IMG/VR virus record: IMGVR_UViG_3300010158_000027
Span: 62,001-126,000 of that record
Length of the DNA: 64,000 bases
Strand: one strand, 5' to 3'
Part shown: one piece after another, positions 12,036 through 57,935 of the stretch
Layout: the number at the start of each line of letters is the position of its first letter
Position numbering within the stretch: position 1 is the first letter of the stretch
Translations under genes and position numbers: made by a program
Notes under the pieces: model-generated
The model's database searches: none
Seen by the model: only the letters and a program-made list of their open reading frames with translations
What the model was told of the DNA's origin: nothing

Positions 12036-12117
12036 GGTTAAAGAAAAATGGTGAGTGGGTTAAAAATAAATGGGTTATAAATTGACTTTTTATATATTTT
12101 TATTATATTTATATAAA

Positions 12118-19171: not shown

Positions 19172-19183
19172 AAATAAAAAGTC

Positions 19184-20867: not shown

Positions 20868-20885
20868 CTGAAGTACATCTAAATT

Positions 20886-20959
20886 GGGGGATTAGCTCAG
20901 CTGGCTAGAGCACCTGCCTTGCACGCAGGGGGTCAACGGTTCGACTCCGTTATCCTCCA
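20886..20959 (+). tRNA. trnA: tRNA-Ala(UGC)
   Basis: GGGGGAT/ATCCTCC acceptor with G3:U70, CCTGC-CTTGCAC-GCAGG anticodon arm, GTTCGACTC; CCA not encoded. Confidence 0.95.
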
Positions 20960-20990
20960 CTTTTAACCTTAAAAAGGATATTTATTACAT

Positions 20991-32117: not shown

Positions 32118-32118
32118 A

Positions 32119-32220
32119 TTATTTTTTTAAAAAGATATGGTTTTTTTCAAAATATTCAATAGTTTTTTTAATACCATCGTAGCGTGTGGCAAATTTAAAG
32201 TTAGGTAAATAACGTTTTAT
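32119..32220 (-). pseudogene. start-less 3' remnant resembling the tail of an NDP-sugar epimerase/GDP-fucose synthase
   Basis: Intergenic frame reads IKRYLPNFKFATRYDGIKKTIEYFEKNHIFLKK-stop with no ATG. Confidence 0.55.
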
Positions 32221-34721: not shown

Positions 34722-34726
34722 AGTTA

Positions 34727-35428: not shown

Positions 35429-35429
35429 A

Positions 35430-36119: not shown

Positions 36120-36122
36120 ATT

Positions 36123-37484: not shown

Positions 37485-37507
37485 AGTTTTATATAAATAA
37501 TTTATGT

Positions 37508-38167
37508 TTAGTGTTGAGCGATATAATCATCTTTATATGATTTATAACTATTTAATTCATAATCAAGTAATGGCTCATCAATAAAATAACATATATATCC
37601 CAAATTGGTAATTCTTAACCACGTATCGTAATCTTCAATACCTCTTAAATGATATGATTCTGATATTAAATTCACCTCATTTAACAAATCTTTAGACACT
37701 AAAACCGATGAATTAATAATTAAATTGTGTTTTTTTAGTAATTCATAATTAAATTCATATATATTATCAGGATTTTTTTGATTCCAAACATCAATATACT
37801 TACCTTTAGCGTATAACTGATCTTCATAATATGATTCGGTACAAATAAATTTATATTTATCAGTTAAAGACATTTGTTTTTCTAACTTTTCAGACTTCCA
37901 AGTATCATCATCATCTAAAAATGCTATCCAATCACCAAGGGATTGTTTTATTCCATAATTTCTAACAATAGATGGTAAACCACTACGTTTATCTAATTTA
38001 AAGTATCTAATATTGGTTCTTGTTTCTAATTCATCGTATCTAATGTCATCCGAACAATCATTAATTACTATTATTTCAAAATCAGTATAAGTTTGGTTTA
38101 GAACTGAATTTATTGATCTTTGTACCAAGTCGAATCTATTATATGTTGGTATTATAACGCTTACCAT
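37508..38167 (-). CDS. glycosyltransferase family 2
   Basis: VSVIIPTYNR, INDCSDD, RNYGI, AFLDDDD, EDYDTWLR. Confidence 0.92.
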   Translation of the reverse strand: MVSVIIPTYNRFDLVQRSINSVLNQTYTDFEIIVINDCSDDIRYDELETRTNIRYFKLDKRSGLPSIVRNYGIKQSLGDWIAFLDDDDTWKSEKLEKQMSLTDKYKFICTESYYEDQLYAKGKYIDVWNQKNPDNIYEFNYELLKKHNLIINSSVLVSKDLLNEVNLISESYHLRGIEDYDTWLRITNLGYICYFIDEPLLDYELNSYKSYKDDYIAQH

Positions 38168-38180
38168 ATCCTTTATTTTT

Positions 38181-38324
38181 TTACATTACCAGTTTATAAT
38201 GATAATTGATGGGATTATCATTTTTGTCTATTCTTCCCCCCATAAAACTACCATCTTTTCTCTTAACGGGGAATGGTATTTTTTCATGAAGGAAGACGTC
38301 TTCTTGTTGTTGGCTATAATACAT
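38181..38324 (-). pseudogene. 47-aa chimeric scar ORF (FkbM-like start joined to a glycosyltransferase-like tail)
   Basis: MYYSQQQEDVFL-HEKIPFPVKRKDGSFMGGRIDKNDNPINYHYKLVM; the second half aligns with the tail of 38327..38974. Confidence 0.5.
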
Positions 38325-38326
38325 AA

Positions 38327-38974
38327 TTATAAATGGTTTGTGTGTTCAGGGTATAGCATTTCATCATTTTCATTAAATGCTTGTCCCACGAATGTTTTAT
38401 ATTCCCTCTCCGTTGGGAACGGTGTGTGTTCAAAGAACTCATCATGAACCACACAATTAAGTTTTACTATCGGATAAATCTTTTCTCTCAAAAAGTTTTG
38501 ATCTACTTGCCAAAAATCTCCCTTGACGTATTCGTCAATTAGTTGTTTCATTTCCTTTATGGTTCCTTTTTTTGATCCCCACATTCCCCCTAAAATTTCA
38601 GTTCCATGAGCTGGATGATCCCTCATAATATGAAATCCTTTATCTGAATTTAACCATTCATCGACAGCATATTTCTCTCTTAAGTTTACCCTTGAGTCGC
38701 AGTCTCTAACAATCACCACATCAACATCATCATCAGACGAGGGATAGAATCTCCAAAACATTCCGTCCCAATCACCCTCAACTCCCATATTAATTAGTTC
38801 AACATTATCAAACTCTTTTAATTTTTCTATGGTACTTTCTAACGTGGATGTTCCGTAATAATATCTACACACCCAATCAGGGTAAACATCTTTTGCCAAT
38901 TCAGCATTTCTAATTGCCCCTACATTATAAACGGGATTATCCCCCCATAAAGAGAATGATATTATTTTTTTCAT
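38327..38974 (-). CDS. putative glycosyltransferase (FSLWG/MFWRF/RDCDSR family)
   Basis: MKKIISFSLWG, GMFWRF, RDCDSR (DxD), HIMRDHP, GGMWG, DQNFL. Confidence 0.6.
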   Translation of the reverse strand: MKKIISFSLWGDNPVYNVGAIRNAELAKDVYPDWVCRYYYGTSTLESTIEKLKEFDNVELINMGVEGDWDGMFWRFYPSSDDDVDVVIVRDCDSRVNLREKYAVDEWLNSDKGFHIMRDHPAHGTEILGGMWGSKKGTIKEMKQLIDEYVKGDFWQVDQNFLREKIYPIVKLNCVVHDEFFEHTPFPTEREYKTFVGQAFNENDEMLYPEHTNHL

Positions 38975-39639
38975 AAATAAAAATTATTTGATTGTCTTGT
39001 TTGGTAAACATTGTTATCATGATGCCAATCCTTAACATTATTATTATGAACGTGGTCAGGTGATCCATATCCCCAATCAGGGTGTTCGTGTTTTATTATT
39101 ACAGTATCAATATAAACTTGTTTATTTAATAGATTACCCACCACCATAAATTCATTGTCTGACCAACAGGATTTATAATCAGGATGGTAAATGTAGTTAA
39201 ATCTTTTGTAGTATTCTCTTCCTAAAATACAAAGGGTGTTTAATCTATTTCCTTGGAATCCATCATTAAACCATAAAACTCCGTCCGTATCTGGGTAATT
39301 AAATGTCATGTTATCTCTTATAATGTCGTCGTAACCTTTAATTTGTGGTATCATATCATCAGATGCCAGTAATACAATATCCCACTCGTACTCCAACTCA
39401 TTTAAATCCCTATTTACAGCATCAATTTTAGATAACGAACTGCCCACAACCACTTTTGTGTTTTTATACTCATTAAGTTGGGTTATTACCTCATCTGTAT
39501 TCATTTCATCATCGTCAGCATCAATAGAAATCAAAAAAAACGTATTGTCAATATTGTTACAATACTCATGATATTTATTTAGTGTTGAAAAAAACATCTC
39601 TTTCCTTCCCCTAGTCGGGAACTTAATAAGTAATTTCAT
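38971..39639 (-). CDS. GT2-like glycosyltransferase
   Basis: KFPTRGR, LASDDM, SDNEF, IKHEH. Confidence 0.7.
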   Translation of the reverse strand: MKLLIKFPTRGRKEMFFSTLNKYHEYCNNIDNTFFLISIDADDDEMNTDEVITQLNEYKNTKVVVGSSLSKIDAVNRDLNELEYEWDIVLLASDDMIPQIKGYDDIIRDNMTFNYPDTDGVLWFNDGFQGNRLNTLCILGREYYKRFNYIYHPDYKSCWSDNEFMVVGNLLNKQVYIDTVIIKHEHPDWGYGSPDHVHNNNVKDWHHDNNVYQTRQSNNFYL

Positions 39640-41276
39640 TCGTTTATAATTTTAATATATTCCTCTTTTATTTTTTTTGCAACCTCCTCTGAATTAAATC
39701 TATTAATGTCAGATGGAATGTCAACTCTCTCTTTATTTAATATTTCCCCACTTTCATTAACGTTATAAATCCATCCGGGTTTTCCACACATCCAACCCTC
39801 AATGGTCGTTCTACCCAAGAGAATTCCCGCAGTCTCGGAACAGTTTTTAACGAACGTGCCCACCTTATTGGTTGCGTTATGGTATTTAACGTGTTGGTTA
39901 GATAACAAATCATTTAAATAATTCGATTTGTTTTCACCCACCAACCACAATTCCTTATTAATCGACTTGGAGTAATCAACTAGATCTCGTATTGAGTCTT
40001 CTCTTAAATAATCAATCGTCCCAACAAATAGGACATACCCGTCGTCTTTGGTGTTTTTAATGTTAAACTTTTTAGAATCTATTGGGTTATAAATGATTTC
40101 CGTCTTATCTTTTGGTATTTCAAAATTATCTATAATGTGTTTTTGTATTTCAGGTCGAATGCAAATATACTTTTTAATTGTTTCATTAAGTACTGGATTC
40201 TCAAGTTCAATCACTTCAGAATGTATGGTAGAAATCTTGTCTACGTTTGGATACATTTGACACATTTGATTGGTTACGGGTGTATGTTGTGTGTGGATAA
40301 TATCGAAGTCAACTTCACCCACCTTATACATCATGTTCGGTTGTGACGGTGTAACACCTTGTGGAGTATTGAATCCCCACTTCCCATCACCCAATTTATA
40401 TCCTGGAGCTGAACTAAAAGGTAAAACCTTTATCCCTTGTTTCTGAGCTAATTTGGATAGTTCCCCATCAATATCTGAAAGTACCGTAACATCACAATTT
40501 AAGTTTTTAAGTCCCCTTGCCAATTCATACACATACATTTCTGATCCGGTGTAGGTTTTAAAAAACAAACAAGACAACAATACTTTTAATGGTGATTCTA
40601 AAGTTAGATTTCTGTTAACTTTAACTGGTAAAACGTCTTTGTATTTTTCAGCAAATACTTCTCTATTTTTTTCCCATTGTTCGTTTGTCTGACCAATTGA
40701 TTTATGTGTGACTCTAACATCATACATAACCCCAATTTTAACTCCCTCAATAAAATTCCTAAAAGAAAAATCAACATCATAAAAGTGAAACCCTCCGATG
40801 TCTTGATTAAAATTTTGTTTAATCTTTTTTTTATTTATTACGATAAACAATCCATCCACCAAAACGACACTATCCAATTGGTTACCTAAATTGTTTGAGT
40901 ATTTGGATTCCCATTTTTTGCCTTCGTGTTCGTGATTGACGATACCTTTCATCTTTGAAAAATCTTCCCACCATCTGCCAGATTTTGGCATGTTTGTGGT
41001 TCCAGCTAACCCTAAAATTCCGTATTCATCGTTTCTTTTAAAATGGTTAATGATTTTTTGACCCCAATTTTTTGAATCGAAATATATATCATCATGCAGT
41101 AGCACTACGATATCGTTTGTGGATTGGTCTAAAATCCTATTATAAATTTCAGTTAAAGAGTATTCACCATTGTTTTCAAATGGAATAACTTCGGGAGACG
41201 GAACCCCCGAAGTTTTTGTTAACATTTTAATAAAATCGTTATCAATATGTCTTGTTGAGAATCCTATCGTTATCAT
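39636..41276 (-). CDS. two-domain glycosyltransferase (GT-A N-terminus plus GT-B/GT4-like C-terminus)
   Basis: N-terminal YNRIL...LLHDDI...FHFYDVD; C-terminal TGSEMYVYELARGL...GRTTIEGWMCG. Confidence 0.8.
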   Translation of the reverse strand: MITIGFSTRHIDNDFIKMLTKTSGVPSPEVIPFENNGEYSLTEIYNRILDQSTNDIVVLLHDDIYFDSKNWGQKIINHFKRNDEYGILGLAGTTNMPKSGRWWEDFSKMKGIVNHEHEGKKWESKYSNNLGNQLDSVVLVDGLFIVINKKKIKQNFNQDIGGFHFYDVDFSFRNFIEGVKIGVMYDVRVTHKSIGQTNEQWEKNREVFAEKYKDVLPVKVNRNLTLESPLKVLLSCLFFKTYTGSEMYVYELARGLKNLNCDVTVLSDIDGELSKLAQKQGIKVLPFSSAPGYKLGDGKWGFNTPQGVTPSQPNMMYKVGEVDFDIIHTQHTPVTNQMCQMYPNVDKISTIHSEVIELENPVLNETIKKYICIRPEIQKHIIDNFEIPKDKTEIIYNPIDSKKFNIKNTKDDGYVLFVGTIDYLREDSIRDLVDYSKSINKELWLVGENKSNYLNDLLSNQHVKYHNATNKVGTFVKNCSETAGILLGRTTIEGWMCGKPGWIYNVNESGEILNKERVDIPSDINRFNSEEVAKKIKEEYIKIINE

Positions 41277-41884
41277 AAACCAGTACTTCCAAAAGCATTA
41301 TCGTTTCTATCTTTTTCATCAATGTCGTCAACTTTAATCAAATCAACCCACTTGCCACATAAAACGGGACACAGAACCGCTTGAGCGATTTTTTGTCCTT
41401 TTTCTATTTTAATCCTTTCGTTTGTTGTGTTAAAAATAATGACTTTAATTTCATTTATATACCCACTATCCACCGTTCCTGGAGAATTTAAAACCATTAA
41501 TCCTTGATTTAATGCCAACCCACTTTTACTTCTGACTTGTATTTCGTACCCTAATGGAATATCAAATCTTAACCCTGTAGGTATTAGTTTTCTGTTATTT
41601 GCTTGCACCCAAACCTCCTCCGTTGATCTTAAATCAAATCCAGAATCGGACTCGTATGCATATTCTGGGTTCTGATTCTCACTGTCATTAATATATTTTA
41701 CAGGAACTTTTTGATCGACAATAGAATCTACCGGTTGATTAAATTGGTTCTCAATGTCATTAACATCAATACCCATTGAATCTAACATCGACTGAGGATC
41801 GGACATATCAATATTACTTAATTTGCCTTGTAATTCCTTAAGCATTTTCATGCTGTCCCTCATGTCTTTTATTTTTTCAAACAT
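41273..41884 (-). CDS. dut: dUTPase with N-terminal extension
   Basis: SGFDL, RSKSGLA, GTVDSGY, KIAQ, FGSTG. Confidence 0.9.
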   Translation of the reverse strand: MFEKIKDMRDSMKMLKELQGKLSNIDMSDPQSMLDSMGIDVNDIENQFNQPVDSIVDQKVPVKYINDSENQNPEYAYESDSGFDLRSTEEVWVQANNRKLIPTGLRFDIPLGYEIQVRSKSGLALNQGLMVLNSPGTVDSGYINEIKVIIFNTTNERIKIEKGQKIAQAVLCPVLCGKWVDLIKVDDIDEKDRNDNAFGSTGL

Positions 41885-45816: not shown

Positions 45817-46549
45817 CGTTTAATAGTCTTATTATGTCTTGCGTTGATAAACCATTTTGGCTTGCCATCGTTTTTATTTGTTTTAAATTTCTTTTTAATA
45901 GAGATTTGATAACCTCATTATTTTTGTGGTCTTTAGGTTGCTTATCCAAAATGATATCCTCATCTATTTCTTCACTCTCATCCAATCCCTTCTCTTTTAA
46001 AATTAACCTATCAATAAAATTATTTTTATCTTTTATTTTTTTAGGTACTTTTTTATGTAGGTTAGGTTTTTTACCTTGTTGTAATGTCCTTTCTTCTGCG
46101 GAATCTTTATCCAATCCCAACTCATCTTTATAGTATTTTACGGTGTCTTTGTAACCCATAAATTTAGTAGCTTCAAATCCAAAGGCATCCTCCATATCTT
46201 CCTCTGCAACCACACCTTCACCGTAATATCCGTACCACCCTCTTAATAGTGGATCTCTTGGATTTCTAGCCATCCCAACGGTTTTATCCATAGTTGTTGA
46301 TCCTTTAACGGTAGATGCCGGATCTAATATCGGAATGTCAGATGAATTCCATGTTCCGTCAAGTCCAACTAATTCCGTAACCTCCTCCTCATTTCCTTCT
46401 TTTTTTGTTTTTGATTTAAAAATTTCATGACTTTTACATGGCATATATTTTCTATTACCATCTTCATTGTGATAGTGTGATCCACTACAGTTTAAAGTTT
46501 TGGCAACCCTTTCGGCTCTTTCCTTTGTAGAATATTTATATGATTTCAT
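45806..46549 (-). CDS. hypothetical protein with an N-terminal Cys/His motif
   Basis: AKTLNCSGSHYH...YMPCKSH may bind metal; preceded by TATTTATA. Confidence 0.7.
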   Translation of the reverse strand: MKSYKYSTKERAERVAKTLNCSGSHYHNEDGNRKYMPCKSHEIFKSKTKKEGNEEEVTELVGLDGTWNSSDIPILDPASTVKGSTTMDKTVGMARNPRDPLLRGWYGYYGEGVVAEEDMEDAFGFEATKFMGYKDTVKYYKDELGLDKDSAEERTLQQGKKPNLHKKVPKKIKDKNNFIDRLILKEKGLDESEEIDEDIILDKQPKDHKNNEVIKSLLKRNLKQIKTMASQNGLSTQDIIRLLNDEQ

Positions 46550-46562
46550 ATCCGCTTTTACC

Positions 46563-46590
46563 TATAAATACTGCGAACAAACTATTTATC
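46563..46590. promoter_or_regulatory. back-to-back putative late promoters
   Basis: TATAAATA (46563-70, reading TATTTATA on minus) and TATTTATC (46583-90), 13 and 11 nt from divergent ATGs. Confidence 0.55.
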
Positions 46591-46601
46591 ATAAAAAAAG
46601 A

Positions 46602-49271
46602 ATGCCGAGCCAAAACATAAATTCATATTATTACCCAAAATATCGAACAAAATTAAACTATGGACATTATTTTGATCTTACCTTGGCTTCTGACGAAAGA
46701 GGATACGATGAGGAGGTGGTGTTCTCAAATAAGTTAATCGGGGAGGATGACGGTAATAGGTTACCTATATTTATAGATTTAAACAACACATTAACAACTA
46801 CCCAACCCTTTATTAATTTTGGTGATTATATTTCAGGTAACACTTTAGTATCTAAAAATTATTATAATCCAAACAGTTTAGATTTAACTTGTTTAACGGC
46901 ATATACAAGTACATGTGATATTGGGCTTGTGGGAACCGATAATGGATTATATACCGAACTAACGGGTCAACCGTTACAATATACTATGGGTGTAGATGAT
47001 ACCCATAAATTCGATCCTCATTATAGAGACAGACGATTTAAAATGCATCCAGTGACGGGATATACTCAACCACCTAATGTTGTTTTTTCGGGTCGACCAA
47101 AAGATTCTATTTATAACATGGTTTATAAATCTGATCCGGTTATCGGTTATTACCAAGAACTTTATGGTGGATTCTATCAGGGGTTTTATAAATTAAACGG
47201 ATATGATTATGAAGTTTTTCCTGAGAGAATAAATAAGGGGTGGTCGGTAGAGATGGTTTTAAAACCGAGAACCAACGATGAATATTTTATTAACAACTCA
47301 ACTGAAGAATATTTAAACAACAAATACCCAAATAATAGTGGAACTTTCTTTTATTTTGGTACAAGAGCTGAAAACAAATTTTACCATAATGCTGAGGGTT
47401 CACCAAGTTCCGATAGTGGATATACAAGAAATACTGAAGATTTAACTTGTTTATCATCTTGTGCTTGTACCAACACTGGGGTCACAAACGCCAATTGTGT
47501 TGATATATATCCAAGTAGTGGGTTCACTACCATACATAATGTTGGGTGTAATTGTGGATGTGCTAGTACTGAGCGAGTACCGTTTCCTGAGACTAATCCA
47601 ATGTTCGATGTTTTATCAAACGCACTTTCGTTTAGATTTAATGGTTGTTCGGAGAATCCAAGTATCGGGGTTAAATATATTAAAATTACTGGATCATGTG
47701 TAACCACCGGAACATGTGAAACAACGGGAACCACATTCCAAACGGGATATACGATAACTGAAGTGTTTTCGGATCCAATCTACGACATATGTGGAATTGA
47801 GTGTGGTGATCTTATACCTGATAGATGGGTTATGATTAGTGCGGTTTTTGAGAGATATCGCACCATAGAGGATTGTGATTTACAAAATCTGGGGGGATTA
47901 AACGATATGCGAACGGTAACTACCCAATCATCTTTAGATGGTAATTCATATAGACTAATCAGTCCACCCCAAACACATACAGGATCAATTCTCGAACCTG
48001 AAATCCACAAAATTAATTTTAAAACTAAATGGTTCGATGATTTAAAATATAGATTGGGAACTTTAAAACTATACGTAAACGGTTATCTGTTTATGATAAT
48101 TGAAGATTTTGAAGAGGTTATCCCAAGAGAATTAAATACAGAAAAAGAAAAACAAGTCGGGGTTCCGTTTAACATTTCTTTTGGTGGGGGAACGCAAGGA
48201 TTACATGATCATTTAATTTTTTCAGGGTGTTCACAACCTAACGGACCATACACACAAGATCCCGAGTTATTTCCAAATAATATATTAAGTGGAACAACAT
48301 TGAGTGGGTTATCAACAAATATTTTACTGGAAGAGAATTTTGGTGGAACATTTATGGGGGGGATATCTCAATTTAGAATGTATACCGAACCGTTGGATTT
48401 TACGCAGATACAACACAATACTAGAATATTAAAAGATAAATTCGGTTTATTTGATTATTATTGCCCATCATGTTATGACGGTTATATAGTATTAAACATT
48501 CATACTGTTATTAACGTATATAGTGGTAGTATCATTTCAAATATTACTGTTAATAATGATTTCCCAGTACCTTCAGATACGACTGTTGGGTATGATGTTA
48601 CCTTAAACGTAATAAGTGGATCACCAATCAATCTTAAAGGTGAAATCATCATACCTAAAGGTCAGATGACAGCATCTAAATTAATAACGATAGACGACTC
48701 GTACGGTAGATTGGTTAATGATGCGATAATAAAACCTCCATTTGTTACTATGGGTAATAATAATATTAGAGTTAATCACGTAATAGAAAGGGATATGATA
48801 ATATACGAATCTCCAGTATTACCTAAACCAACACCAATACCTACGGCAACACCTACGTCGACACCAACAACAACACCGACAGGTACTTTAACATCGACAC
48901 CAACAATGACACCTACACCAACGCCGACACCGACTCCGATGTTAGGGGTTGCGTATTATGGTAAAATTAATAAGAAAAATATTAACCAAACTGATGTTGG
49001 GTTATTGGATGAATTGTTAACGAACGATATATTATCAACACACATAAATTATGTGGATGAACAAGGTTATTGTTATTTATTAATTCCAGAAACATTTACT
49101 CAACCTGAAACATTTAGAGACAGTGAAGAGGGTTGTGATGGATTTATTATTCCGTTTATTCAGACGGAAACTTTAAATATTTCTGACGATTTCGGAAATG
49201 TGATTATTTATTATGTATATAGATCATTTGTGTCCACTTATTCAAGTGTGGATGTATGGGTTTGTAATTAA
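46602..49271 (+). CDS. large virion-like protein, LamG/ConA-like, Cys-rich, with a Pro/Thr linker
   Basis: GWSVEMVLK...FFYFG, LKLYVNG, NISFGGG, FMGGISQFRMY resemble LamG strands; PT tract at 48822-48938; start placed at ATG 46602. Confidence 0.6.
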   Translation: MPSQNINSYYYPKYRTKLNYGHYFDLTLASDERGYDEEVVFSNKLIGEDDGNRLPIFIDLNNTLTTTQPFINFGDYISGNTLVSKNYYNPNSLDLTCLTAYTSTCDIGLVGTDNGLYTELTGQPLQYTMGVDDTHKFDPHYRDRRFKMHPVTGYTQPPNVVFSGRPKDSIYNMVYKSDPVIGYYQELYGGFYQGFYKLNGYDYEVFPERINKGWSVEMVLKPRTNDEYFINNSTEEYLNNKYPNNSGTFFYFGTRAENKFYHNAEGSPSSDSGYTRNTEDLTCLSSCACTNTGVTNANCVDIYPSSGFTTIHNVGCNCGCASTERVPFPETNPMFDVLSNALSFRFNGCSENPSIGVKYIKITGSCVTTGTCETTGTTFQTGYTITEVFSDPIYDICGIECGDLIPDRWVMISAVFERYRTIEDCDLQNLGGLNDMRTVTTQSSLDGNSYRLISPPQTHTGSILEPEIHKINFKTKWFDDLKYRLGTLKLYVNGYLFMIIEDFEEVIPRELNTEKEKQVGVPFNISFGGGTQGLHDHLIFSGCSQPNGPYTQDPELFPNNILSGTTLSGLSTNILLEENFGGTFMGGISQFRMYTEPLDFTQIQHNTRILKDKFGLFDYYCPSCYDGYIVLNIHTVINVYSGSIISNITVNNDFPVPSDTTVGYDVTLNVISGSPINLKGEIIIPKGQMTASKLITIDDSYGRLVNDAIIKPPFVTMGNNNIRVNHVIERDMIIYESPVLPKPTPIPTATPTSTPTTTPTGTLTSTPTMTPTPTPTPTPMLGVAYYGKINKKNINQTDVGLLDELLTNDILSTHINYVDEQGYCYLLIPETFTQPETFRDSEEGCDGFIIPFIQTETLNISDDFGNVIIYYVYRSFVSTYSSVDVWVCN

Positions 49272-49284
49272 AATTTATATGTGA

Positions 49285-49779
49285 ATGGTAAAATTTAACA
49301 CTAGTGGTGGAATTGGCGTAATGGGCTTTATTAGTCCAATGGACTCTAGGGACACATATGCGGTTGTTGACCCATTATATGGTATTGACGGGTTAAGAAA
49401 CGTTGACACATTAGACGATTTAAACGAGATTCCTGAGGACAGACGACGTTCGGGGATGATTGTCGGTGTTAGTGGTGGTACCGTATATTATAAATTAAAA
49501 GATGTAGAGTGGATAGGTGAAATTATTGATTGGATTGAAATCGATTTCACAAAAATAACACATGTAGATAAGGAATCACCAATTGGATTAATCGACGGAA
49601 TTAATAATACTTTTGAATTATTATATGACCCAATACCAAATTCCGAACATTTATATTTAAATGGATTATTAAACGATTCGGGGGTAGATGAGGACTATTT
49701 AATCGATGGTAAAGTAATTTATTTCTCAATTCCTCCAGATATTGGTATGAAAATTAAGTGCAGTTACAGAACTTTTTAA
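49285..49779 (+). CDS. tail-fibre-associated module protein
   Basis: N-terminal LNEIPEDRRRSGMIV; C-terminal LYLNGLL...DY...F.IPP is shared with the 1127-aa protein. Confidence 0.55.
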   Translation: MVKFNTSGGIGVMGFISPMDSRDTYAVVDPLYGIDGLRNVDTLDDLNEIPEDRRRSGMIVGVSGGTVYYKLKDVEWIGEIIDWIEIDFTKITHVDKESPIGLIDGINNTFELLYDPIPNSEHLYLNGLLNDSGVDEDYLIDGKVIYFSIPPDIGMKIKCSYRTF

Positions 49780-49800
49780 GGTAGCCCACTATTTAATAGT

Positions 49801-50076
49801 ATGGGAGAATCCAGTGACATAAAAAAAATAGAGACAAAAATGGAAGACAGTAAAACATATATCACATCAGACTTATACTTAACAGCCTACTTAAAGGTTA
49901 AAGGACATAAATATTCAGTGGATAGAGTTAAATCAAAATCAAATTTTGTTTTTGAAAAGTCGTCCGATTTATTATCCGACGTAAACGATTATTTATCGGA
50001 GTCTGGATCTTGTGAACCCTTAATCTATACAAACGCAATTAAGAACTTAAAAAATCTATTATATAATAATCGATAA
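49801..50076 (+). CDS. small protein, DUF5659-like
   Basis: YITSDLYLTAYLK.KG...FVF pattern (recognised from memory). Confidence 0.45.
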   Translation: MGESSDIKKIETKMEDSKTYITSDLYLTAYLKVKGHKYSVDRVKSKSNFVFEKSSDLLSDVNDYLSESGSCEPLIYTNAIKNLKNLLYNNR

Positions 50077-50335
50077 TTTTTTTTATCGATTTTGGGCTTT
50101 TGCGAAAGTTCATGATATTTATATAAAAATGATTTTACCGTTTGGTAAAACGATTACTATTTATATTTAAAAATCTTATTTAAAATCCTTATTTACAACC
50201 CTTATTTGTATTCCGTGAGATCGCACGAATATTTTTTTCATGCCCTCTAAGTCCATTATTTATATTTATCATTCAAGGATTTTTCCTACTCGTGTAAAGT
50301 TCACATAATAAATAAATAATTAAAAACAAATTTTT

Positions 50336-53300
50336 ATGTCAAATACTAAAATTGTCTTAAATAGACAGTCCGATTTAATATTGGACAATGCGGAAATTAC
50401 ATCACCAGTTGGTATCGTCTTAGCTGACATCGCTGGAGCTACTGATGCAATATCTGCTGAAGAATCATTAAGAATAGCTGGTGTTGAACAAGTAACTCAA
50501 CTGGTAAAAACGGAACAAGATACTCGCGTCGCTGCTGTATCTACTGAAGAGTCTGCTCGTATCGCTGGTGATGCTAACCTTCAAAACCAAATCGACAATG
50601 TACTATCTAATGTTGATGGTGCTGCTTTGGATTCATTAACTGAAATCGTTGGAGCATTCCAATCTGCTGATGATGACTTGAATGGTGCTATCACACTTTT
50701 AGCTAACACTGCAAGTTCTGCATTGTCAACTGAAGTTGAAGCTCGTATCTCTGATGTTGATGCTGAACAAGCAAGAGCTGAATCAGCTGAAGCTGTATTG
50801 ACTGCTGATTTATCTGCTGAAGTTTCTCGTGCAATGGCTGCTGAAGACGCAATGGATAATAGATACTCTACAGAAATCTCTAATGAAGAGTATGCACGTA
50901 TCGCTGCTATAAACGCAGAAGAATCTGCTCGTATCGCTGCTGTTGATGCTGAACAAGCAAGAGCAATGGATGCTGAAGCTAGTTTATTCGATTCTATCCT
51001 TTCTGAAGAAGGTAGAGCAATGGATGCTGAAGCTAGTTTAGCTACATTTATCGCTGCTGAACACAGTGAACACATCGCAAACGAATTATCTATCGTTACG
51101 GCAATGGATGCTGCTGATTCAGCTGAAGCATCTGCTCGTATCGCTGGTGATGCATCTTTAACTGCTGATTTGTCTGCTGAAGTTGCTGCTCGTGGAACTG
51201 CTGTTGATGCTGAAGAATCTGCAAGAATTGAACAATTTAAGTTTTTAGATTATAAACATAACGTACGTGAATCTGAATTGACTTCTGATTTATCAAGTGA
51301 AGTTGCTGCTAGAGGAAATGCTATCGATAATGAAGCATCTGCAAGAATCGATGGTGACCAATCACTACAAAACCAAATTGATTTCATCACAGACAACACT
51401 GATGCTGCTGCAATTGATTCATTAACTGAAATCGTTGCTGCTTTCCAAAGTGCTGACGGAGAAATCAATGGTGCAATTACTACATTAGCTGATGCTGCTG
51501 GAGCTAACTTGTCAACTGAAGTTGCTCGTGCTACAAGTGCTGAAGGTGTATTAACTGCTGATTTATCTTCTGAAGTTGCTGCAAGAGAAGCTGCTGTTTC
51601 TATGGAAGAAGCTGCTCGTATTGCTGATGTTGATGCTGAAGAGTCAAGAGCTATCGCTGCTGAAGGTGTATTAACTGCCGATTTATCTACTGAAGTTGCT
51701 GCTCGTATCGCTGATGTTGATGCTGAAGAGTCTCGTGCTATTGCTGCTGATGAGTCAATCGCTGCTGGTTTATTTGATGAAATCGTTGATAGAGCTGCTG
51801 CGGTTTCTACTGAAACATCTGCACGTATTGCTGACGTTGATGCTGAAGAATCTCGTGCTATTGCTGCTGAAGGTGTATTAACTGCCGATTTATCTGCTGA
51901 AGCATCTACTAGATATGCTAACGATTACAAATTGACATCTGATTTAAATTCAGAAATCACAAACAGAGGAAATGCTGTTGATGCTGAAGCGTCTTACAGA
52001 GTTGCTGGAGATTTATCTCTACAAAACCAAATTGACTTCATCACAGAAAACATCGACCCAGTTGCTATCGATTCATTAACTGAAATCGTTGCTGCTTTCC
52101 AAACTGCTGATGGTGATATTAACGGAGCAATTACTACATTAGCTGATGCTGCTGCTGCTGGTTTATCAACTGAGGTTGAAAGAGCTACAAGTGCTGAAGG
52201 TGTATTAACTGCTGATTTGTCTACTGAAGTTGCGGCTCGTATTGCTGATGTTGATGCTGAAGAATCTGCTCGTATCGCTGCTGTAAATGCTGAAGCGTCT
52301 ACTGCTAGAGCTGCTGAAGGTGTATTAACTGCTGATTTATCAAGTGAAGTATCTGCAAGAATCGCTGACGTTGATGCTGAAGAAGCAAGAGCAATGTCTG
52401 CTGAGTTAGTTTTAACAAACGATTTATCTGCTGAAGTTTCTAACAGAATAGCTGATGTTGATGCTGAAGAATCAAGAGCTACTGCTGCTGAAGCGGTATT
52501 GACTGCTGATTTATCAAGTGAAATGTCTGCACGTATTGCTGACGTTGATGCTGAAGAAGCAAGTAGAGTTAAAGCTGATGCATTTATTACTAAAGAATTA
52601 TCTTCTGAAGTTTCTAACAGAGGAACTGCTGTAACTGCTGAAGCATCTTACCGTGTTTCAGGTGATTTGTCACTTCAAAACCAAATTGACTTCATTACAT
52701 CTAACGTTGATGCTGCGGCAATCGATTCATTAACTGAAATCGTTTCTGCATTCCAATCTGCTGATGGTGATATCAACAACGCAATCACTACATTAGCTGA
52801 TGCTGCTGGTGCTAACTTGTCAACTGAAGTTGCAAGAGCTGAAAGTGCTGAAGGTGTATTGACTGCTGATTTATCAAGTGAAGTATCTGCTCGTTTAGCT
52901 CAAATCCAATCAGTGGGTAATGATATTGATGATGAAAAAGCATCAAGACAAGCCGCTGTTTCTGCTGAAGTATCTGCTCGTATCTCTGATGTTGATGCTG
53001 AAGAATCAAGAGCTATCGCTGCTGAAGGTGTTTTAACATCAGATTTATCTTCTGAAGTTGCTAACAGAGAAGCTGCAATATCTGCTGAAGAATCAATGAG
53101 AGTTGAAGCTGATGCATCTATCGCTGCTGAATTGTCTTCTGACATTGCTGGATTAGCTGATGTTGATGGAACAACTATCGTTCTTAACGGTGGTACTAAC
53201 CAAATCGAATTAGCTGACGAAGTTGCTGCTGGTGCTGGTGGAAATAGAACGTTCTTAGGTGAAATCGATATCGAAACAATCTTGAAAGTAGGTGGTGTTG

Positions 53301-53719
53301 ATGTAATGGCTGAAATTAGTTCAGAAATTGCAAGAGCTGAAGCTGCTGAAGCGTCTATCGCTGAAGAATTGTCTACTGAAGTATCTTACTTAATCGCTAA
53401 CACAGATTTAGGTTCAATTGACTCATTCGCTGAGATGGTTGATACATTAAACTCTGAAATATCTCGTGCTGAAAGTGCTGAAGTTAGTATGACTGCGGAT
53501 TTCGTAAATATCTACGCTAAACACGTTGGAATCGAAGCTCCAAATGGTACTAAAACACTTTTCGTTCTTGGTACTCCAGTTAGAACAGGTTCAGAATTAG
53601 TATACTTGAATGGTTTGTTATTGACTCCATCTGAAGATTATACTATGAATGGAAATGATGTTGAATTCTCTATCGCTCCTGCAGCAACTGATACAATCAG
53701 TGCTTACGGTGTATGTTAA
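50336..53719 (+). CDS. long Ala/Glu-rich coiled-coil fibre protein with nested repeats
   Basis: About 29-aa units EVAARIADVDAEESRAIAAEGVLTADLSS; four LQNQID...DSLTEIV.AF blocks; strong GCT/GAA codon bias. Confidence 0.75.
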   Translation: MSNTKIVLNRQSDLILDNAEITSPVGIVLADIAGATDAISAEESLRIAGVEQVTQLVKTEQDTRVAAVSTEESARIAGDANLQNQIDNVLSNVDGAALDSLTEIVGAFQSADDDLNGAITLLANTASSALSTEVEARISDVDAEQARAESAEAVLTADLSAEVSRAMAAEDAMDNRYSTEISNEEYARIAAINAEESARIAAVDAEQARAMDAEASLFDSILSEEGRAMDAEASLATFIAAEHSEHIANELSIVTAMDAADSAEASARIAGDASLTADLSAEVAARGTAVDAEESARIEQFKFLDYKHNVRESELTSDLSSEVAARGNAIDNEASARIDGDQSLQNQIDFITDNTDAAAIDSLTEIVAAFQSADGEINGAITTLADAAGANLSTEVARATSAEGVLTADLSSEVAAREAAVSMEEAARIADVDAEESRAIAAEGVLTADLSTEVAARIADVDAEESRAIAADESIAAGLFDEIVDRAAAVSTETSARIADVDAEESRAIAAEGVLTADLSAEASTRYANDYKLTSDLNSEITNRGNAVDAEASYRVAGDLSLQNQIDFITENIDPVAIDSLTEIVAAFQTADGDINGAITTLADAAAAGLSTEVERATSAEGVLTADLSTEVAARIADVDAEESARIAAVNAEASTARAAEGVLTADLSSEVSARIADVDAEEARAMSAELVLTNDLSAEVSNRIADVDAEESRATAAEAVLTADLSSEMSARIADVDAEEASRVKADAFITKELSSEVSNRGTAVTAEASYRVSGDLSLQNQIDFITSNVDAAAIDSLTEIVSAFQSADGDINNAITTLADAAGANLSTEVARAESAEGVLTADLSSEVSARLAQIQSVGNDIDDEKASRQAAVSAEVSARISDVDAEESRAIAAEGVLTSDLSSEVANREAAISAEESMRVEADASIAAELSSDIAGLADVDGTTIVLNGGTNQIELADEVAAGAGGNRTFLGEIDIETILKVGGVDVMAEISSEIARAEAAEASIAEELSTEVSYLIANTDLGSIDSFAEMVDTLNSEISRAESAEVSMTADFVNIYAKHVGIEAPNGTKTLFVLGTPVRTGSELVYLNGLLLTPSEDYTMNGNDVEFSIAPAATDTISAYGVC
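50570..53100 (+). repeat. nested coding repeats in the fibre gene
   Basis: LQNQID blocks begin near 50578, 51364, 52018 and 52673; the last three are about 654 nt apart. Confidence 0.85.
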
Positions 53720-53744
53720 TTCATCATTAAAATAATGAAACGCA

Positions 53745-53778
53745 AATGGGGGAGGTTTACCTCCCCTATTGTGTTTTT
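53745..53778 (+). terminator. intrinsic terminator
   Basis: AATGGGGGAGG-TTTA-CCTCCCCTATT followed by GTGTTTTT. Confidence 0.7.
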
Positions 53779-53811
53779 ATAATAAACAATTAAAAATTAA
53801 AAAATTAAAAA

Positions 53812-54225
53812 ATGACACAGAATAAACTTAGAGTGAAAGGTGTTAATAGTGGTGGTGGAACATATCCATCTATGTTATATAACATTGACGCAATTAATGA
53901 TGGTCCATTCCAATTCAATCATATTCGTTATGATGCAAATCAACCTCAAATCTTAACTAACGTATTACAAATTAGTACCATGGGTAGAAATGGTGATAAC
54001 TTTGATTTATTACAAATCATCCAAACCAATCAATTAATTCGAATTACACAAGAAGGTAATCCATCAATTTACCAACAATTCCGAGTTATGGGTGGAGGTC
54101 AGATTACGAAAGGAACGAATGGTGTTTCACCTATATCACCATATATTACATACCCAGTAGCATTTGATGTATTCACTATATCGGATTTTCCACATGATAT
54201 ACCAGTAATCGTTACTGTAGTATAA
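53812..54225 (+). CDS. hypothetical protein starting with a KLRVKGV tag
   Basis: MTQNKLRVKGV...; shares a 16-nt leader with the LRR genes. Confidence 0.75.
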   Translation: MTQNKLRVKGVNSGGGTYPSMLYNIDAINDGPFQFNHIRYDANQPQILTNVLQISTMGRNGDNFDLLQIIQTNQLIRITQEGNPSIYQQFRVMGGGQITKGTNGVSPISPYITYPVAFDVFTISDFPHDIPVIVTVV

Positions 54226-54256
54226 ATAAACAATTAAAAATAAAAAATAAAAAATT

Positions 54257-55732
54257 ATGGCAACATTCATAACATCCAAATCAGTTGGACAAACAATCAA
54301 CATTTGGGTTCAAACATCAACTGGATTTTGGAAATATAATCACGATGGAAGTGATTCAAGTGTATTTGACCAAGATGATGGTTGGGCAAACAATATACCA
54401 GTTATAAACGCAAACGGTGAATTCACAATTATATCATGTTTATCTGATGGTACAGTTAGTGGAGATATAACTCAGTTGAATTTAGAAAATAACCAATTAA
54501 CATCATTTGACGGAACTGGTTTAGAGAGTTTAACTAATTTATATTTACCTAGTAATCAATTAACATCATTGGATGGATTTATTTTTCCAACAAGTTTAAC
54601 TACTTTTATTTTAGCAAATAACCTCTTTACATCATTTGATGGAACTGGATTAAGTGGTCTACGTCTTTTGAATTTAACTGATAACCAATTAACATCATTT
54701 GACGGAACTGGTTTAACAAGTTTATTTGAGTTGTATTTAGAAAATAACCAATTAACATCAATTGATGTGACTGGTTTATCTAGTTTACTACGTTTGCGTT
54801 TACAAAATAACCAATTCACATCAATTGATGTGACTGGTTTATCTAGTTTAGTCGGTTTGAATTTAAATCAGAACCAATTAACATCATTTGATGGAACTGG
54901 TTTATCTAGTTTACTTGAATTGAGTTTAGATAATAACCAATTCACATCAATTGATGTGACTGGTTTATCTAGTTTAACTTGGTTGGGTTTACAACAAAAC
55001 CAATTAACATCATTTGATGGAACTGGTTTATCCGGTTTACTTCAATTATATTTATCTAGTAACCTTTTAACTTCATTTGATGGAACTGAGTTAGTGAGTT
55101 TAACACGATTGGGGTTAAGTATTAACCAATTAACATCATTTGACGGAACTGGTTTAGTGAGTTTAACTTGGTTAGACTTAAATAGTAACCAATTAACATC
55201 ATTTGATGGGACAGATTTAACAAATTTAACTGAGTTGTCTTTAGGTGTTAACCAATTAACATCATTAGATGGGTTTATTTTACCAACAAGTTTAATTAAT
55301 TTGGATTTAAACAATAACCAATTAACATCATTTGATGGTAATGGACTATCTAGTTTACATGTTTTAAATATTAATAGCAACCAATTAACATCATTTGACG
55401 GAACTGGTTTAGTGAGTTTAACTCAATTGTATTTATCTAATAACCTTTTAACATCACTTGATGTTACTGATTTAGTGAGTTTAGTTGGTTTGTATTTAAC
55501 TGATCTTAAAATAGGTAGTAATCCAATTACACCGTTATCAAACAATCAAATCATACATCAACTTAACCAACATAATGTACAATATGGTCAATTTTATTCA
55601 AATGGTGGTAGAACATCTGCAGGCGATGCTGATTATGATAACTTAGTAAGTTTAGGTTGGAATTTCTATGGTTTAGATTTAATCATTGTTGGAAGTGGTA
55701 AACTAAGAGTAAAAGGTGTAACAACTATTTAA
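54257..55732 (+). CDS. leucine-rich repeat protein (16 full repeats plus one partial)
   Basis: 21-22-aa LxxLxLxxNQLTSFDGTGLSS units between conserved caps; ends GSGKLRVKGVTTI; no signal peptide. Confidence 0.92.
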   Translation: MATFITSKSVGQTINIWVQTSTGFWKYNHDGSDSSVFDQDDGWANNIPVINANGEFTIISCLSDGTVSGDITQLNLENNQLTSFDGTGLESLTNLYLPSNQLTSLDGFIFPTSLTTFILANNLFTSFDGTGLSGLRLLNLTDNQLTSFDGTGLTSLFELYLENNQLTSIDVTGLSSLLRLRLQNNQFTSIDVTGLSSLVGLNLNQNQLTSFDGTGLSSLLELSLDNNQFTSIDVTGLSSLTWLGLQQNQLTSFDGTGLSGLLQLYLSSNLLTSFDGTELVSLTRLGLSINQLTSFDGTGLVSLTWLDLNSNQLTSFDGTDLTNLTELSLGVNQLTSLDGFILPTSLINLDLNNNQLTSFDGNGLSSLHVLNINSNQLTSFDGTGLVSLTQLYLSNNLLTSLDVTDLVSLVGLYLTDLKIGSNPITPLSNNQIIHQLNQHNVQYGQFYSNGGRTSAGDADYDNLVSLGWNFYGLDLIIVGSGKLRVKGVTTI

Positions 55733-55763
55733 AATAAACAATTAAAAATTAAATAAAAAAATT

Positions 55764-56660
55764 ATGGCAACATTCATAACATCCAAAGCAGTTGGAGAAT
55801 CAATCAACATTTATGTTCAAACATCAACTGGATTTTGGAAATATAATCACGATGGAAGTGATTCAAGTGTAAAGGCAAATGGTTGGGTAGAATATATACC
55901 AGTAGCGAACATAAACGGTGAATTCACAATCATTTCATGTGATTCAGATGGTACAGTTAGTGGTGATATAACTAATTTACATTTAAATGATAACCAATTA
56001 ACATCATTTGACGGAACTGGTTTATCTAGTTTAAATATTTTGAATTTAAATAGTAACCAACTAACATCATTTGACGGAACTGGTTTATCTAGTTTAACTG
56101 ATTTGAATTTATATAATAACCCATTAACATCATTTGATGGAACTGGTTTATCTAGTTTAACTGAGTTGAATTTACGTAATAACCAATTAACATCATTTGA
56201 CGGAACTGGTTTATCCAGTTTAACTACTTTGAATTTAAGTGGACCTAGAGGTGGTGGTGGGACACTAACCTCAGTTAGTAACCTTCCATCAAGTTTAATT
56301 AATTTAAATTTACAAAGTAACCAATTAACATCATTTGATGGAACTGGTTTATCTAGTTTAACTCATTTATATTTATCTAGTAACCAATTAACATCATTTG
56401 ACGGAACTGGTTTATCTAGTTTAACTTATTTGTATTTATTTGGTAATCCAATAAACCAATCATCCGTAAACAATCAAATCCTAAATCAACTTAATCAAAA
56501 TGGATTATCTGGTGGTTATTTTGAATCTAACAATGGTAGAACATCGGCAAGTAACACTGATTATGATAACTTAATAAGTTTAGGTTGGAGTTTTAATGGT
56601 TTAGATTTAATCATTGTTGGAAGTGGTAAACTAAGAGTTAAAGGTGTAACAACTATTTAA
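55764..56660 (+). CDS. leucine-rich repeat protein paralogue (7 repeats plus one partial)
   Basis: Same N-cap (MATFITSK...TGFWKYNHDGSDSS) and C-cap as the neighbour. Confidence 0.92.
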   Translation: MATFITSKAVGESINIYVQTSTGFWKYNHDGSDSSVKANGWVEYIPVANINGEFTIISCDSDGTVSGDITNLHLNDNQLTSFDGTGLSSLNILNLNSNQLTSFDGTGLSSLTDLNLYNNPLTSFDGTGLSSLTELNLRNNQLTSFDGTGLSSLTTLNLSGPRGGGGTLTSVSNLPSSLINLNLQSNQLTSFDGTGLSSLTHLYLSSNQLTSFDGTGLSSLTYLYLFGNPINQSSVNNQILNQLNQNGLSGGYFESNNGRTSASNTDYDNLISLGWSFNGLDLIIVGSGKLRVKGVTTI

Positions 56661-56689: not shown

Positions 56690-56716
56690 AAGGGACTCAA
56701 ATCGAGTCCCTTTTTT
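56690..56716. terminator. probably bidirectional intrinsic terminator
   Basis: AAGGGACTC-AAATC-GAGTCCCTT-TTTT between convergent genes. Confidence 0.8.
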
Positions 56717-56735: not shown

Positions 56736-57935
56736 TCATTTTAAGTTTTTATACAAATTTGTTTTCGGATTATATTCCAAACCATCATTACCCCCATTAA
56801 ACAAGTTATGAATTAATTTATCATATGTTTTAACCAATTTCATATTATCCGCATGATATCTCATCAATACCTTATCGTTACGTTCATTATACGAGTCAAT
56901 ATTCTTATCATGCTCAGTTAATATGTAATCCAATTGTTTAGCACCATCAACGGTATCTGAACCTTCATAGTAATAACCCAAATCTTTACACATCGGAGCG
57001 TTATGTAATACTGGATATCCCATATACGCAGCATCCAAATAAATGTAATTTAATGGATTTAATATTTGATGACAGATTAATACGTCAATATGTTGGGTTA
57101 ATATAAATGCTGTTTGATATCTACTTTCGGATGTTATTTTATTGTCTTTAAATAAATCAAAAGTCCTAATCATTCCCATGAACTCCTTGTGTTTAGCAAC
57201 TTTCTCGGAATTGGTTAACATTAATTTATCTATATGTTCTTTACCTATATCTCCACGATACGATTCTTCGGCAATCATTGCTGGTATAAGACAAAATTTA
57301 ACCATGTTAAGGTTCGGTTCCATCACACCCAATCGTTTCTTTTCTTTACCGATGTTGTATCGATAATCTTTTTTAAATGAACCCTTTTTAAATCCTTTTT
57401 CAATATCAACAAGAGCCTCTAGTAGATATTGGTGATGCCATATGAAAGGGACGATAAACGCTTTAGACCGATATAGTGTATGATAATAACCACAATTAGT
57501 TTCATGTTGTTGAGGTATATACCATATTTCATCATATGCTTCATCGAATTGATAAACTTTTTTCTCATCTTCTTTAAACAGGATGTTTTCAGCACTTAGA
57601 ATATAATTGTTACCACATTTGTATGCAATTATTTTTTTATTCGGTTTTGATTTAAACTTCTCAATTTCAGATTTATTAATCTGAGCTCCCATAACGATTA
57701 ACAAATCCATGTCTTCGTAATGGTCTTTAAAGTTGCAAATGTTAACATCGGTTAAATAACTTGGTTTAGTCGACCAATCAACATCGATTGTGTTTAATAA
57801 AGTTATTTCATATTTCTCATTCGAGTTTTTTAACAACTTAGTTAACATCAATATGTTTTGTTTAATTCCGTTTGTCCAAATCGACTCTTTATTATCTTTT
57901 AGACCGAGTGTAATTCCAATTTTTAAATTTTTCAT
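56736..57935 (-). CDS. DUF2827-like putative glycosyltransferase
   Basis: SIWTNGIKQN, CGNNY, HQILNPLNYIYLDAAYMGYPVLHN...GYYY pattern recalled from DUF2827. Confidence 0.65.
   Translation of the reverse strand: MKNLKIGITLGLKDNKESIWTNGIKQNILMLTKLLKNSNEKYEITLLNTIDVDWSTKPSYLTDVNICNFKDHYEDMDLLIVMGAQINKSEIEKFKSKPNKKIIAYKCGNNYILSAENILFKEDEKKVYQFDEAYDEIWYIPQQHETNCGYYHTLYRSKAFIVPFIWHHQYLLEALVDIEKGFKKGSFKKDYRYNIGKEKKRLGVMEPNLNMVKFCLIPAMIAEESYRGDIGKEHIDKLMLTNSEKVAKHKEFMGMIRTFDLFKDNKITSESRYQTAFILTQHIDVLICHQILNPLNYIYLDAAYMGYPVLHNAPMCKDLGYYYEGSDTVDGAKQLDYILTEHDKNIDSYNERNDKVLMRYHADNMKLVKTYDKLIHNLFNGGNDGLEYNPKTNLYKNLK

Follow-up and report, generated by a model that had tools for sequence, protein, structure and literature searches.

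We analysed a 64,000-nucleotide stretch of DNA from IMG/VR virus record IMGVR_UViG_3300010158_000027 (positions 62,001 to 126,000; hereafter the window), which contains two adjacent genes, A and B, for proteins made of leucine-rich repeats (LRRs). The window is part of a freshwater jumbo phage of about 281-296 kb. Its source contig (IMG/VR 3300010158_000027) measures 281 kb, a 296-kb contig from another sample is 100% identical with the window across 13.5 kb, and every sequencing run in which this phage was found was of freshwater origin. The presence of terminase, portal, major capsid and DNA polymerase genes identifies it as a large tailed phage. Gene A (54257..55732, plus strand) encodes 491 amino acids, and gene B (55764..56660, plus strand) encodes 298. 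A preliminary description, made from the letters of the DNA, had placed paired LRR genes here. This was confirmed by the open reading frames (ORFs) and by Pfam, in which LRR_4/LRR_8 scored 141/105 bits in A and 90/66 bits in B against a cut-off of 27 (E values of 5e-42 and 9e-26, respectively). Both genes were also recovered by Tandem Repeats Finder (TRF) and by exact protein matches, and B was modelled with AlphaFold2 (AF2). LRR families were the only ones that Pfam reported in the two proteins (no toxin domain, and no NEL, F-box or other effector domain), and both genes are intact.

Each protein consists of an N-terminal cap (N-cap), a run of repeats and a C-terminal cap (C-cap). TRF delimited arrays of 63 nt at 54468-55499 (16.3 copies) and 55969-56456, and the 20-mer AACCAATTAACATCATTTGA has 11 exact copies, or 22 when up to 3 mismatches are allowed, always inside A and B (0.02 occurrences expected by chance). 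The units are spaced by 21 residues in 19 of the 21 intervals. In A, the N-cap (residues 1-70; 54257-54466) is followed by 16 units of 21 or 22 residues at 54467-55480, two of them being a 22-residue variant with LDGFIxPTS, and then by the C-cap and the heptapeptide KLRVKGV (55700-55720), after which only TTI and the stop codon remain. In B, the N-cap (residues 1-68; 55764-55967) precedes units at 55968-56483, a C-cap and the same ending, with KLRVKGV at 56628-56648 before TTI and the stop codon. The units of B comprise 6 regular ones, 1 interrupted by GPRGGGG and 1 degenerate capping unit; the earlier count had been 16 versus 7 full repeats. The caps proved to be shared, as had been described: the N-caps (about 68 residues) are about 80% identical, some 60 residues of the C-cap are in common, and both proteins terminate in IIVGSGKLRVKGVTTI.

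Two details of the arrays were recorded besides. A glycine-rich irregular unit, GP(R/K)GGGGTLTSVSNLP(S/T)S, interrupts the array as unit 5 of B (56220-56294), in module 6 of the related locus L003, in modules of locus L019 and in P0015. It is conserved between phages and may give the solenoid a built-in kink or loop. The IDVTGLSS variant of the unit (A5, A6 and A8) contains an 18-nt perfect palindrome, TCACATCAATTGATGTGA, at 54816-54833 and 54942-54959, which a terminator scan flagged on both strands and which is probably incidental to the repeat.

The LRR genes belong to a locus headed by a gene for a fibre-like protein of 1127 amino acids (50336..53719, plus strand), which is acidic, has alpha-helical repeats and contains internal repeats of 87/174 nt at the DNA level. 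A terminator-like hairpin with an 11-bp stem, 6 GC pairs and a T-run lies 3' of it (53745..53770, plus strand). Next comes a 137-codon ORF, p137 (53812..54225, plus strand), whose product begins with the motif KLRVKGVNSGGG (53824-53844), akin to the C-terminal heptapeptide of A and B, and continues as a fibre-knob-like beta domain. By structure search, residues 13-137 of p137 matched C-terminal domains of collagen-like, T4 gp9/10-like and Phage_fiber_rpt proteins (TM 0.70-0.77), and its predicted fold thus resembles a fibre knob. Downstream of B, a hairpin terminator common to B (plus strand) and to a convergent DUF2827 gene (minus strand) closes the locus at 56690..56712, and its sequence recurs 3' of an LRR gene in L003. 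A fibre homologue stood upstream of the LRR genes in L003, L014-L016 and L050, and such a gene occupied this place in all longer related loci.

Four genes of the locus, those for the fibre, p137, A and B, have in front of them an A/T-rich 16-nt element, ATAAAYAATTAAAAAY, at a distance of 24-31 nt from the start codon. Exact copies, on the plus strand and reading ATAAACAATTAAAAAT, lie before p137 (53782..53797), A (54226..54241) and B (55734..55749) and nowhere else in the 64 kb, where 0.09 would be expected by chance. A variant with 2 mismatches, ATAAATAATTAAAAAC, precedes the fibre gene (50312-50327, plus strand), and a copy with 1 mismatch is present at 19160-19175. In relatives, too, this element stands before the homologous genes, and it may act as a late promoter or a regulatory site.

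The most prominent feature of the repeats was the distribution of their variation. Among the 22 regular units of A and B, the pairwise amino acid difference at positions 2, 3, 5, 7 and 8, the x positions of LxxLxLxxN, was 0.70, 0.93, 0.82, 0.89 and 0.74, respectively. At framework positions it was 0.00-0.45, except for position 20 (0.63). This bore out the claim that the five x positions vary most. The framework had further been called nearly fixed at the DNA level, which is true of positions 9-13 and 19 and untrue of L4, D15 and G16, where synonymous polymorphism was found; the proportion of synonymous differences (pS) over the framework was 0.27-0.30. Framework codons were specific to their position: Asn9 was written AAC in 21 of 22 units, as against AAT in 25 of 26 for the consensus Asn at x positions, Thr was ACA at position 12 and ACT at position 17, and Gly was GGA at position 16 and GGT at position 18. 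Because the codons are position-specific, the identity of the framework reflects descent or homogenisation and not codon bias. We also considered whether this conservation of framework DNA is peculiar to the repeats, and rejected the idea; the N-cap has the same position-specific codon conservation, so that low synonymous divergence is a property of the whole family.

By the method of Nei and Gojobori, non-synonymous divergence (dN) at the x codons was 1.0, compared with a synonymous divergence (dS) of 0.34 and a dN of 0.14 in the linked framework. The ratio of dN at x positions to framework dS was 2.6 (1.7-3.9 by bootstrap over units), so that the proposed position-wise comparison again set the x positions above the framework, and the ratio exceeded 1 in 18 of 21 related loci. 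The caps, with dN/dS of 0.3-1.0 and dS of 0.19-0.34, are under purifying or relaxed selection. In a set of 352 distinct units, drawn from about 25 loci, entropy was highest at positions 3, 5, 7 and 8 (2.9-3.6 bits), and the residues at x positions were mainly Tyr, Asn, Asp, Ser and Gly with few aliphatics. In three more distant loci from marine and other metagenomes (L034, L035 and L039), the x positions were fairly uniform, with LTYLNLYGN recurring, and the variation had moved to unit positions 13-18.

An explanation of this pattern that dispenses with selection for new specificities is that the x positions are unconstrained surface residues, varying under relaxed constraint while gene conversion homogenises the framework. 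The identical framework blocks of 39-45 nt are long enough for conversion, the ratio was 1 or less in the three loci just mentioned, and the low synonymous divergence extends to the caps. Neutrality, however, predicts that dN should not exceed dS, whereas dN at the x positions was well above the dS of both framework and caps. The strongly skewed composition of the x positions, and the recurrence of the same five positions in 21 loci, also speak against mere drift. We consider this explanation quite unlikely.

That A and B have the fold of a capped LRR solenoid is supported by the model that AF2 gave for B (pLDDT 90.5, pTM 0.88). It has an all-beta N-cap in residues 1-60 and a C-cap in the order helix, strand, helix, strand. 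Strands assigned by DSSP cover unit positions 3-5, on the concave side, in every unit, together with positions 13-15. The variable positions thus map to the concave face in the model, as had been suggested from the repeat pattern. The tail of B (residues 284-298), which includes KLRVKGV, is disordered in the monomer. Foldseek gave 134 LRR matches in the PDB at E <= 1e-3, with generic LRR ectodomains and adhesins at E values of 1e-6 to 1e-4; among the matches were the Nogo receptor (NgR), GPIb-alpha, Leptospira LIC10831, InlJ, IpaH3 and variable lymphocyte receptors (VLRs). Matches in BFVD also included phage PKD-domain proteins and many LRR proteins of giant viruses. The isolated N-cap, a beta sandwich of 68 residues with one Cys, had no PDB match better than E 0.3. 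Repeats of the IRREKO class have 21-residue units with the consensus LxxLxLxxNxLxxLDLxx(N/L/Q/x)xx and a nested periodicity of 10/11 residues (PMC2946307). The consensus of our units, LxxLxLxxNQLTSFDGTGLSS, fits this class at F14 and D15 and carries Gly (79%) in place of Leu at position 16. With its 21 residues, F14-D15 and two predicted strands, the unit appears closest to IRREKO.

To see how far this architecture extends, we turned to relatives. A profile of the N-cap retrieved 78 clusters only among 1.84 billion representatives, many of them with 2-6 N-caps per protein. Among 185,579 species genomes there was a single match, L050 (CANGUP010000043.1), a phage-like contig of 22.5 kb within a metagenome-assembled genome (MAG) of Flavobacteriaceae; it has the same fibre gene and two LRR genes, one of which carries an N-terminal KLRIKGV. 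Its place in this MAG is a possible clue to the host, or the contig may be a mis-binned phage. The LRR part had at least 819 matches among metagenome proteins, named 'LRR protein' at most. No near-identical DNA was found among GenBank phages, and tblastn returned generic LRR matches only, in Tenacibaculum phages PTm1/PTm5 and in Listeria phage contigs. In a comparison of related loci, such as had been proposed, repeat and module numbers varied widely: relatives have 1-6 modules after the fibre gene, with 1-20 units each, either separate or fused in frame, and in L003 six modules form a single protein of 1569 amino acids.

Of the 120 best homologues, 84 have the heptapeptide: 59 of them within 10 residues of the C-terminus and 25 internally, with a domain following it. 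The variants KLRIKGA, KIRVKGI and RLAIRGI are conservative at the protein level. What follows the internal motif is CBM_5_12, a ConA-like Laminin_G_3 domain, DUF285 repeats or a beta domain behind a poly-Thr linker, and many homologues are annotated with CBM_5_12. The motif also stands at the N-terminus of non-LRR neighbours (p137 and proteins of L015, L016 and L026), and in L050 it heads an LRR module. The arrangement LRR-motif-DUF285 is one protein in L028 and two proteins in L015, where both halves keep the motif. It is flanked by Gly or Ser, alternates basic and hydrophobic residues, and can occupy either end of a protein; it is the sole constant across the proteins of the locus. That the motif is a docking peptide, by which every module plugs into one shared acceptor, for instance the fibre, is speculative.

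We then examined whether the arrays differ between populations. The exact A protein was found on five contigs from five samples with its array identical to the letter, and the exact B protein on three contigs. The nearest variant of A, in L046, differs by five single-nucleotide polymorphisms (SNPs), all synonymous and none at x positions. A comparison of L002 with L003, which come from two samples, showed 1 difference in 12,695 nt, and L009 and L011 are two synonymous changes apart. The arrays are stable in the short term. The VLR-like reading of the preliminary description was not supported, the A array being identical between samples and the arrays of other phages equally stable. Relatives of intermediate divergence (90-99.9%), sought for a test of polymorphism against divergence, were not found.

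One comparison showed a change in module number. Contig Ga0209084_1000005 (L019) has zero differences from the window over 46257-56426, is mosaic from 56427 and is fully diverged beyond 56614. The switch point lies inside the last LRR unit of B, from which L019 runs into a paralogous internal C-cap (56427..56614, plus strand) and then into at least 3 more modules in frame. The extra 2.6 kb was present in runs X1 and X4 and missing from X2 and X3, while the window locus was present in all four, a distribution that favours real presence/absence polymorphism of modules. Neither of the two junctions of the long variant had an exact match in IMG/VR. In L015, three adjacent units are identical to the letter and two-unit blocks are duplicated, from which it follows that tandem duplication is ongoing. 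Across relatives, 319 of the 352 x-signatures were unique (343 expected if positions were independent), the duplicates being local tandem copies or from the same phage; diversity therefore arises from substitution after duplication and not from re-assorting of cassettes. Of the proposal that recombination among the 63-nt units generates a repertoire of binders, the recombination agrees with the L019 switch point, and the generation of a repertoire by re-assorting units does not agree with the near-uniqueness of the signatures.

Programmed diversification, by VLR-like copy-choice or by mutagenic retrohoming as in diversity-generating retroelements (DGRs), would make variants within the population. 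It is suggested by the confinement of variation to defined codons, by AAT being the commonest x codon and by the VLR-like architecture. VLR-like cassette shuffling was rejected on the ground that nearly all x-signatures are unique and no cassette pool is shared. A DGR, which the AAT-rich x codons had prompted us to consider, was rejected as well. No copy of a unit and no template repeat was found in the 64-kb window beyond A and B, and phmmer with BPP-1 queries detected no homologue of the reverse transcriptase (RT) Brt or of Avd at E <= 10 in six-frame ORFs of the window and of all fetched loci. The x codons CAG, GAA, TGG and CGA, which do not conform to NNY, cannot be obtained by adenine-only mutagenesis of AAY. 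The stability of the arrays, down to the single difference between L002 and L003 and the absence of x-position changes in the nearest variant of A, also opposes such a mechanism, which we regard as extremely improbable and already largely refuted. The pattern indicates instead that the arrays change by substitution, unit duplication and framework-mediated recombination, with no programmed diversification.

On the basis of these results, we propose with moderate confidence that A and B are phage-specific modular LRR adhesins, probably displayed on the virion, that are subject to diversifying selection and reshaped by recombination through their framework. Each module has a small N-cap folded as a beta sandwich, then IRREKO-like LRRs of 21 residues in a run, and finally an alpha/beta C-cap. 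Modules are used singly or strung together. The Gly-flanked, amphipathic, basic strand KLRVKGV either ends the protein or links the modules to a knob or carbohydrate-binding domain. Since the genes lie directly behind the fibre gene and have the upstream element in common with it, the proteins are most probably late products that are displayed on the virion. They would serve as accessory adhesins or receptor-binding modules and recognise structures of the host surface through the concave LRR face, which would evolve under diversifying selection. Arrays would lengthen, shorten and fuse through duplication and through homologous recombination between stretches of the conserved 63-nt framework, in the course of evolution and not in that of a single infection. 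Extracellular display and host binding are here read from the arrangement and domain content of the genes.

The preliminary description had offered two roles, receptor-binding tips or inhibitors of host defence proteins. The first fits the context much better, judging by the fibre gene upstream, the shared upstream element and the fusions to CBM5/12, lectin and DUF285 domains. As intracellular binders, A and B would neutralise host defence or take over host proteins in the manner of giant-virus LRR families or bacterial LRR effectors. LRRs are generic protein binders, giant-virus LRR proteins were numerous among the BFVD matches, and neither A nor B has a signal peptide. Against this, Pfam showed no NEL, F-box or other effector domain, homologues are fused to carbohydrate-binding modules and to poly-Thr modules of extracellular type, and both the locus and the upstream element are shared with the fibre and knob proteins. 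An intracellular role therefore seems improbable.

The fusion partners bear on another alternative, in which the modules are on the virion and bind surfaces other than the host's, for example chitinous particles, mucus-like matrices or biofilm polymers. Their effect would be to enrich the phage near its hosts, like that of Hoc and Ig-like 'adherence' domains, and they would not be the receptor binders that trigger infection. CBM_5_12 is a chitin/cellulose-binding family and is accompanied by ConA-like lectin and DUF285 partners, copies and modules are numerous per genome, and the sole genomic match came from a MAG of Flavobacteriaceae, a particle-associated group. However, a diversifying LRR face is more typical of an arms race with variable hosts than of binding to invariant polymers, and the genes adjoin those for the fibre and the knob. 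We judge non-host adhesion unlikely. In our ranking of alternatives to host-binding adhesins it nevertheless comes first; second is neutral drift of the surface residues combined with conversion, third an intracellular role, and last programmed diversification.

Several points weigh against host-binding virion adhesins under diversifying selection. The argument for a virion location draws on synteny and fusion partners, and the PHROGs matches were to families of 'unknown function' only. The ratio of dN at x positions to framework dS could be inflated if gene conversion or codon bias depressed framework dS, and L034, L035 and L039, with their fairly uniform x positions, do not show a ratio above 1. 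The polymorphism in module number was read from assembled contigs, so that assembly collapse is a possible cause. Seven residues are unusually short for a docking peptide, and the acceptor is postulated.

A bolder version of the proposal is that KLRVKGV acts as a universal plug which, from either end of a protein, docks LRR arrays, lectins, CBMs and knobs onto one fibre acceptor. A clade of freshwater jumbo phages would then carry a mix-and-match, antibody-like panel of LRRs, with arrays expanding, contracting and fusing by framework recombination. We put this forward as a doubtful extension.

The surroundings of the locus contained further features. The protein of the DUF2827 gene (56736-57935, minus strand) is about 99% identical with its counterpart in L003 (6986-8185; dN 0.006, dS 0.21), while the DNA polymerases of these two phages share only 57% identity. 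This discrepancy suggests that the fibre/LRR/DUF2827 region has been horizontally exchanged between divergent jumbo phages. A low-GC island on the minus strand (32000-41300; 23-27% GC at 32-38 kb), adjoined by a PhoH gene, holds a glycan-synthesis set of three GT2-type glycosyltransferases, a GT2_5/GT4 fusion, an FkbM methyltransferase, a xylose-isomerase-like TIM barrel and an FAD oxidoreductase. It may serve in glycosylation of the virion or the host surface, for which the poly-Thr linkers of the relatives' adhesins are candidate acceptors. Paralogy was tested in the low-GC ORF series at 30.7-42.6 kb, and none was detected. In the structural segments (2957-5734 and 10180-13845), the portal ORF of 925 codons has an HNH endonuclease domain at about residues 114-278, N-terminal to the portal domain, and in the major capsid ORF of 600 codons the match to the capsid profile is restricted to residues 334-577. 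A gene for a homing/HNH endonuclease of 591 residues lies 3' of the capsid ORF. Genes for tRNA-Ser(TGA) and tRNA-Ala(TGC) are located at 20781-20960, between the structural block and a minus-strand block.

At the least, the locus is a clean natural case of framework-mediated recombination that alters the number of repeats and modules. If A and B are what we propose, a positively selected LRR solenoid with up to six modules per protein, exchangeable through a tiny junction, would be a different solution to the arms race between phage and host, and its logic would be convergent with that of VLRs, plant R proteins and internalins. Display on the virion, if true, would give a handle on the host range of uncultured freshwater jumbo phages, and would offer binder engineering an evolvable, Cys-poor scaffold of 21-residue LRRs with a short docking tag. 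Were the universal plug real as well, the phages would possess a germline-encoded analogue of an LRR recognition repertoire and a natural scaffold for protein display.

Phages usually recognise their hosts through beta-helical spikes, trimeric fibres or Ig-like or lectin tips. In the T-even phages, gp38 or the distal fibre protein gp37 has conserved glycine-rich motifs between hypervariable segments. The module described here is similar in that a conserved framework alternates with short hypervariable segments in phage host recognition and the conserved DNA is usable for recombination; it is different in that gp38 is a polyglycine sandwich forming a single tip, whereas here the fold is an LRR solenoid in a multi-module tandem family. 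The DGR-diversified Mtd of phage BPP-1 is likewise a tail-associated binding protein with site-restricted hypervariability. Its fold, however, is that of a C-type lectin and not an LRR, and the window has no RT, Avd or template repeat and shows variation that is not adenine-specific. The 'fibre cloud' of phage Goslar consists of virion-associated, modular DUF7941 proteins with carbohydrate-binding, hydrolase or LRR/beta-helix domains (10.64898/2026.04.21.720040). It too is a modular jumbo-phage family, in which a disordered segment has been proposed to dock onto a partner domain (10.64898/2026.04.21.720040). In contrast, our locus has no DUF7941 module, the proposed dock is a strand of seven residues, and the phage belongs to another lineage.

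Among bacterial proteins, the closest likeness is to the IRREKO proteins InlJ of Listeria and LIC10831 of Leptospira, which have a 21-residue unit with F/L14-D15 and strands on the concave and convex sides (PMC2946307), as in our model. Both are surface adhesins, and 4u06 and 3bz5 were among the top structural matches. A and B differ from them in having Gly in place of Leu at position 16, other caps and no signal peptide or cell-wall anchor, and in being phage-encoded, with concatenated modules and the KLRVKGV junction. Typical internalins combine an alpha-helical N-cap, 22-residue LRRs and an Ig-like inter-repeat domain, whereas B has an all-beta N-cap, 21-residue units and an alpha/beta C-cap. 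The NEL effectors IpaH and SlrP are set apart by the C-terminal NEL E3-ligase domain and by 20-residue LPxLPxx units, both missing from A and B, and the IpaH3 match spans the LRR part only.

The VLRs, to which the genes had first been likened, share with them a capped solenoid in which the number of units varies and the diversity is concentrated in the x residues of LxxLxLxxN, on the concave side, as in VLR-A/B/C, and the VLR structures 5ufb, 2o6s and 4k5u were among the Foldseek matches to B (E about 5e-5). VLR units have 24 residues and lie between Cys-rich LRRNT and LRRCT caps, whereas the phage units have 21 residues between a novel beta-sandwich N-cap and an alpha/beta C-cap. The germline VLR gene is incomplete and is filled in by copy choice from LRR cassettes that flank it, in an assembly driven by a cytidine deaminase of AID/APOBEC type, so that a population contains many variants. 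The phage ORFs are complete, with no flanking cassette library in the window and no somatic assembly seen, the arrays are identical in 5 samples, and their carrier is a phage instead of a lymphocyte. The analogy is therefore not one of mechanism or membership; it is valid for the architecture of the proteins and for the location of their variation.

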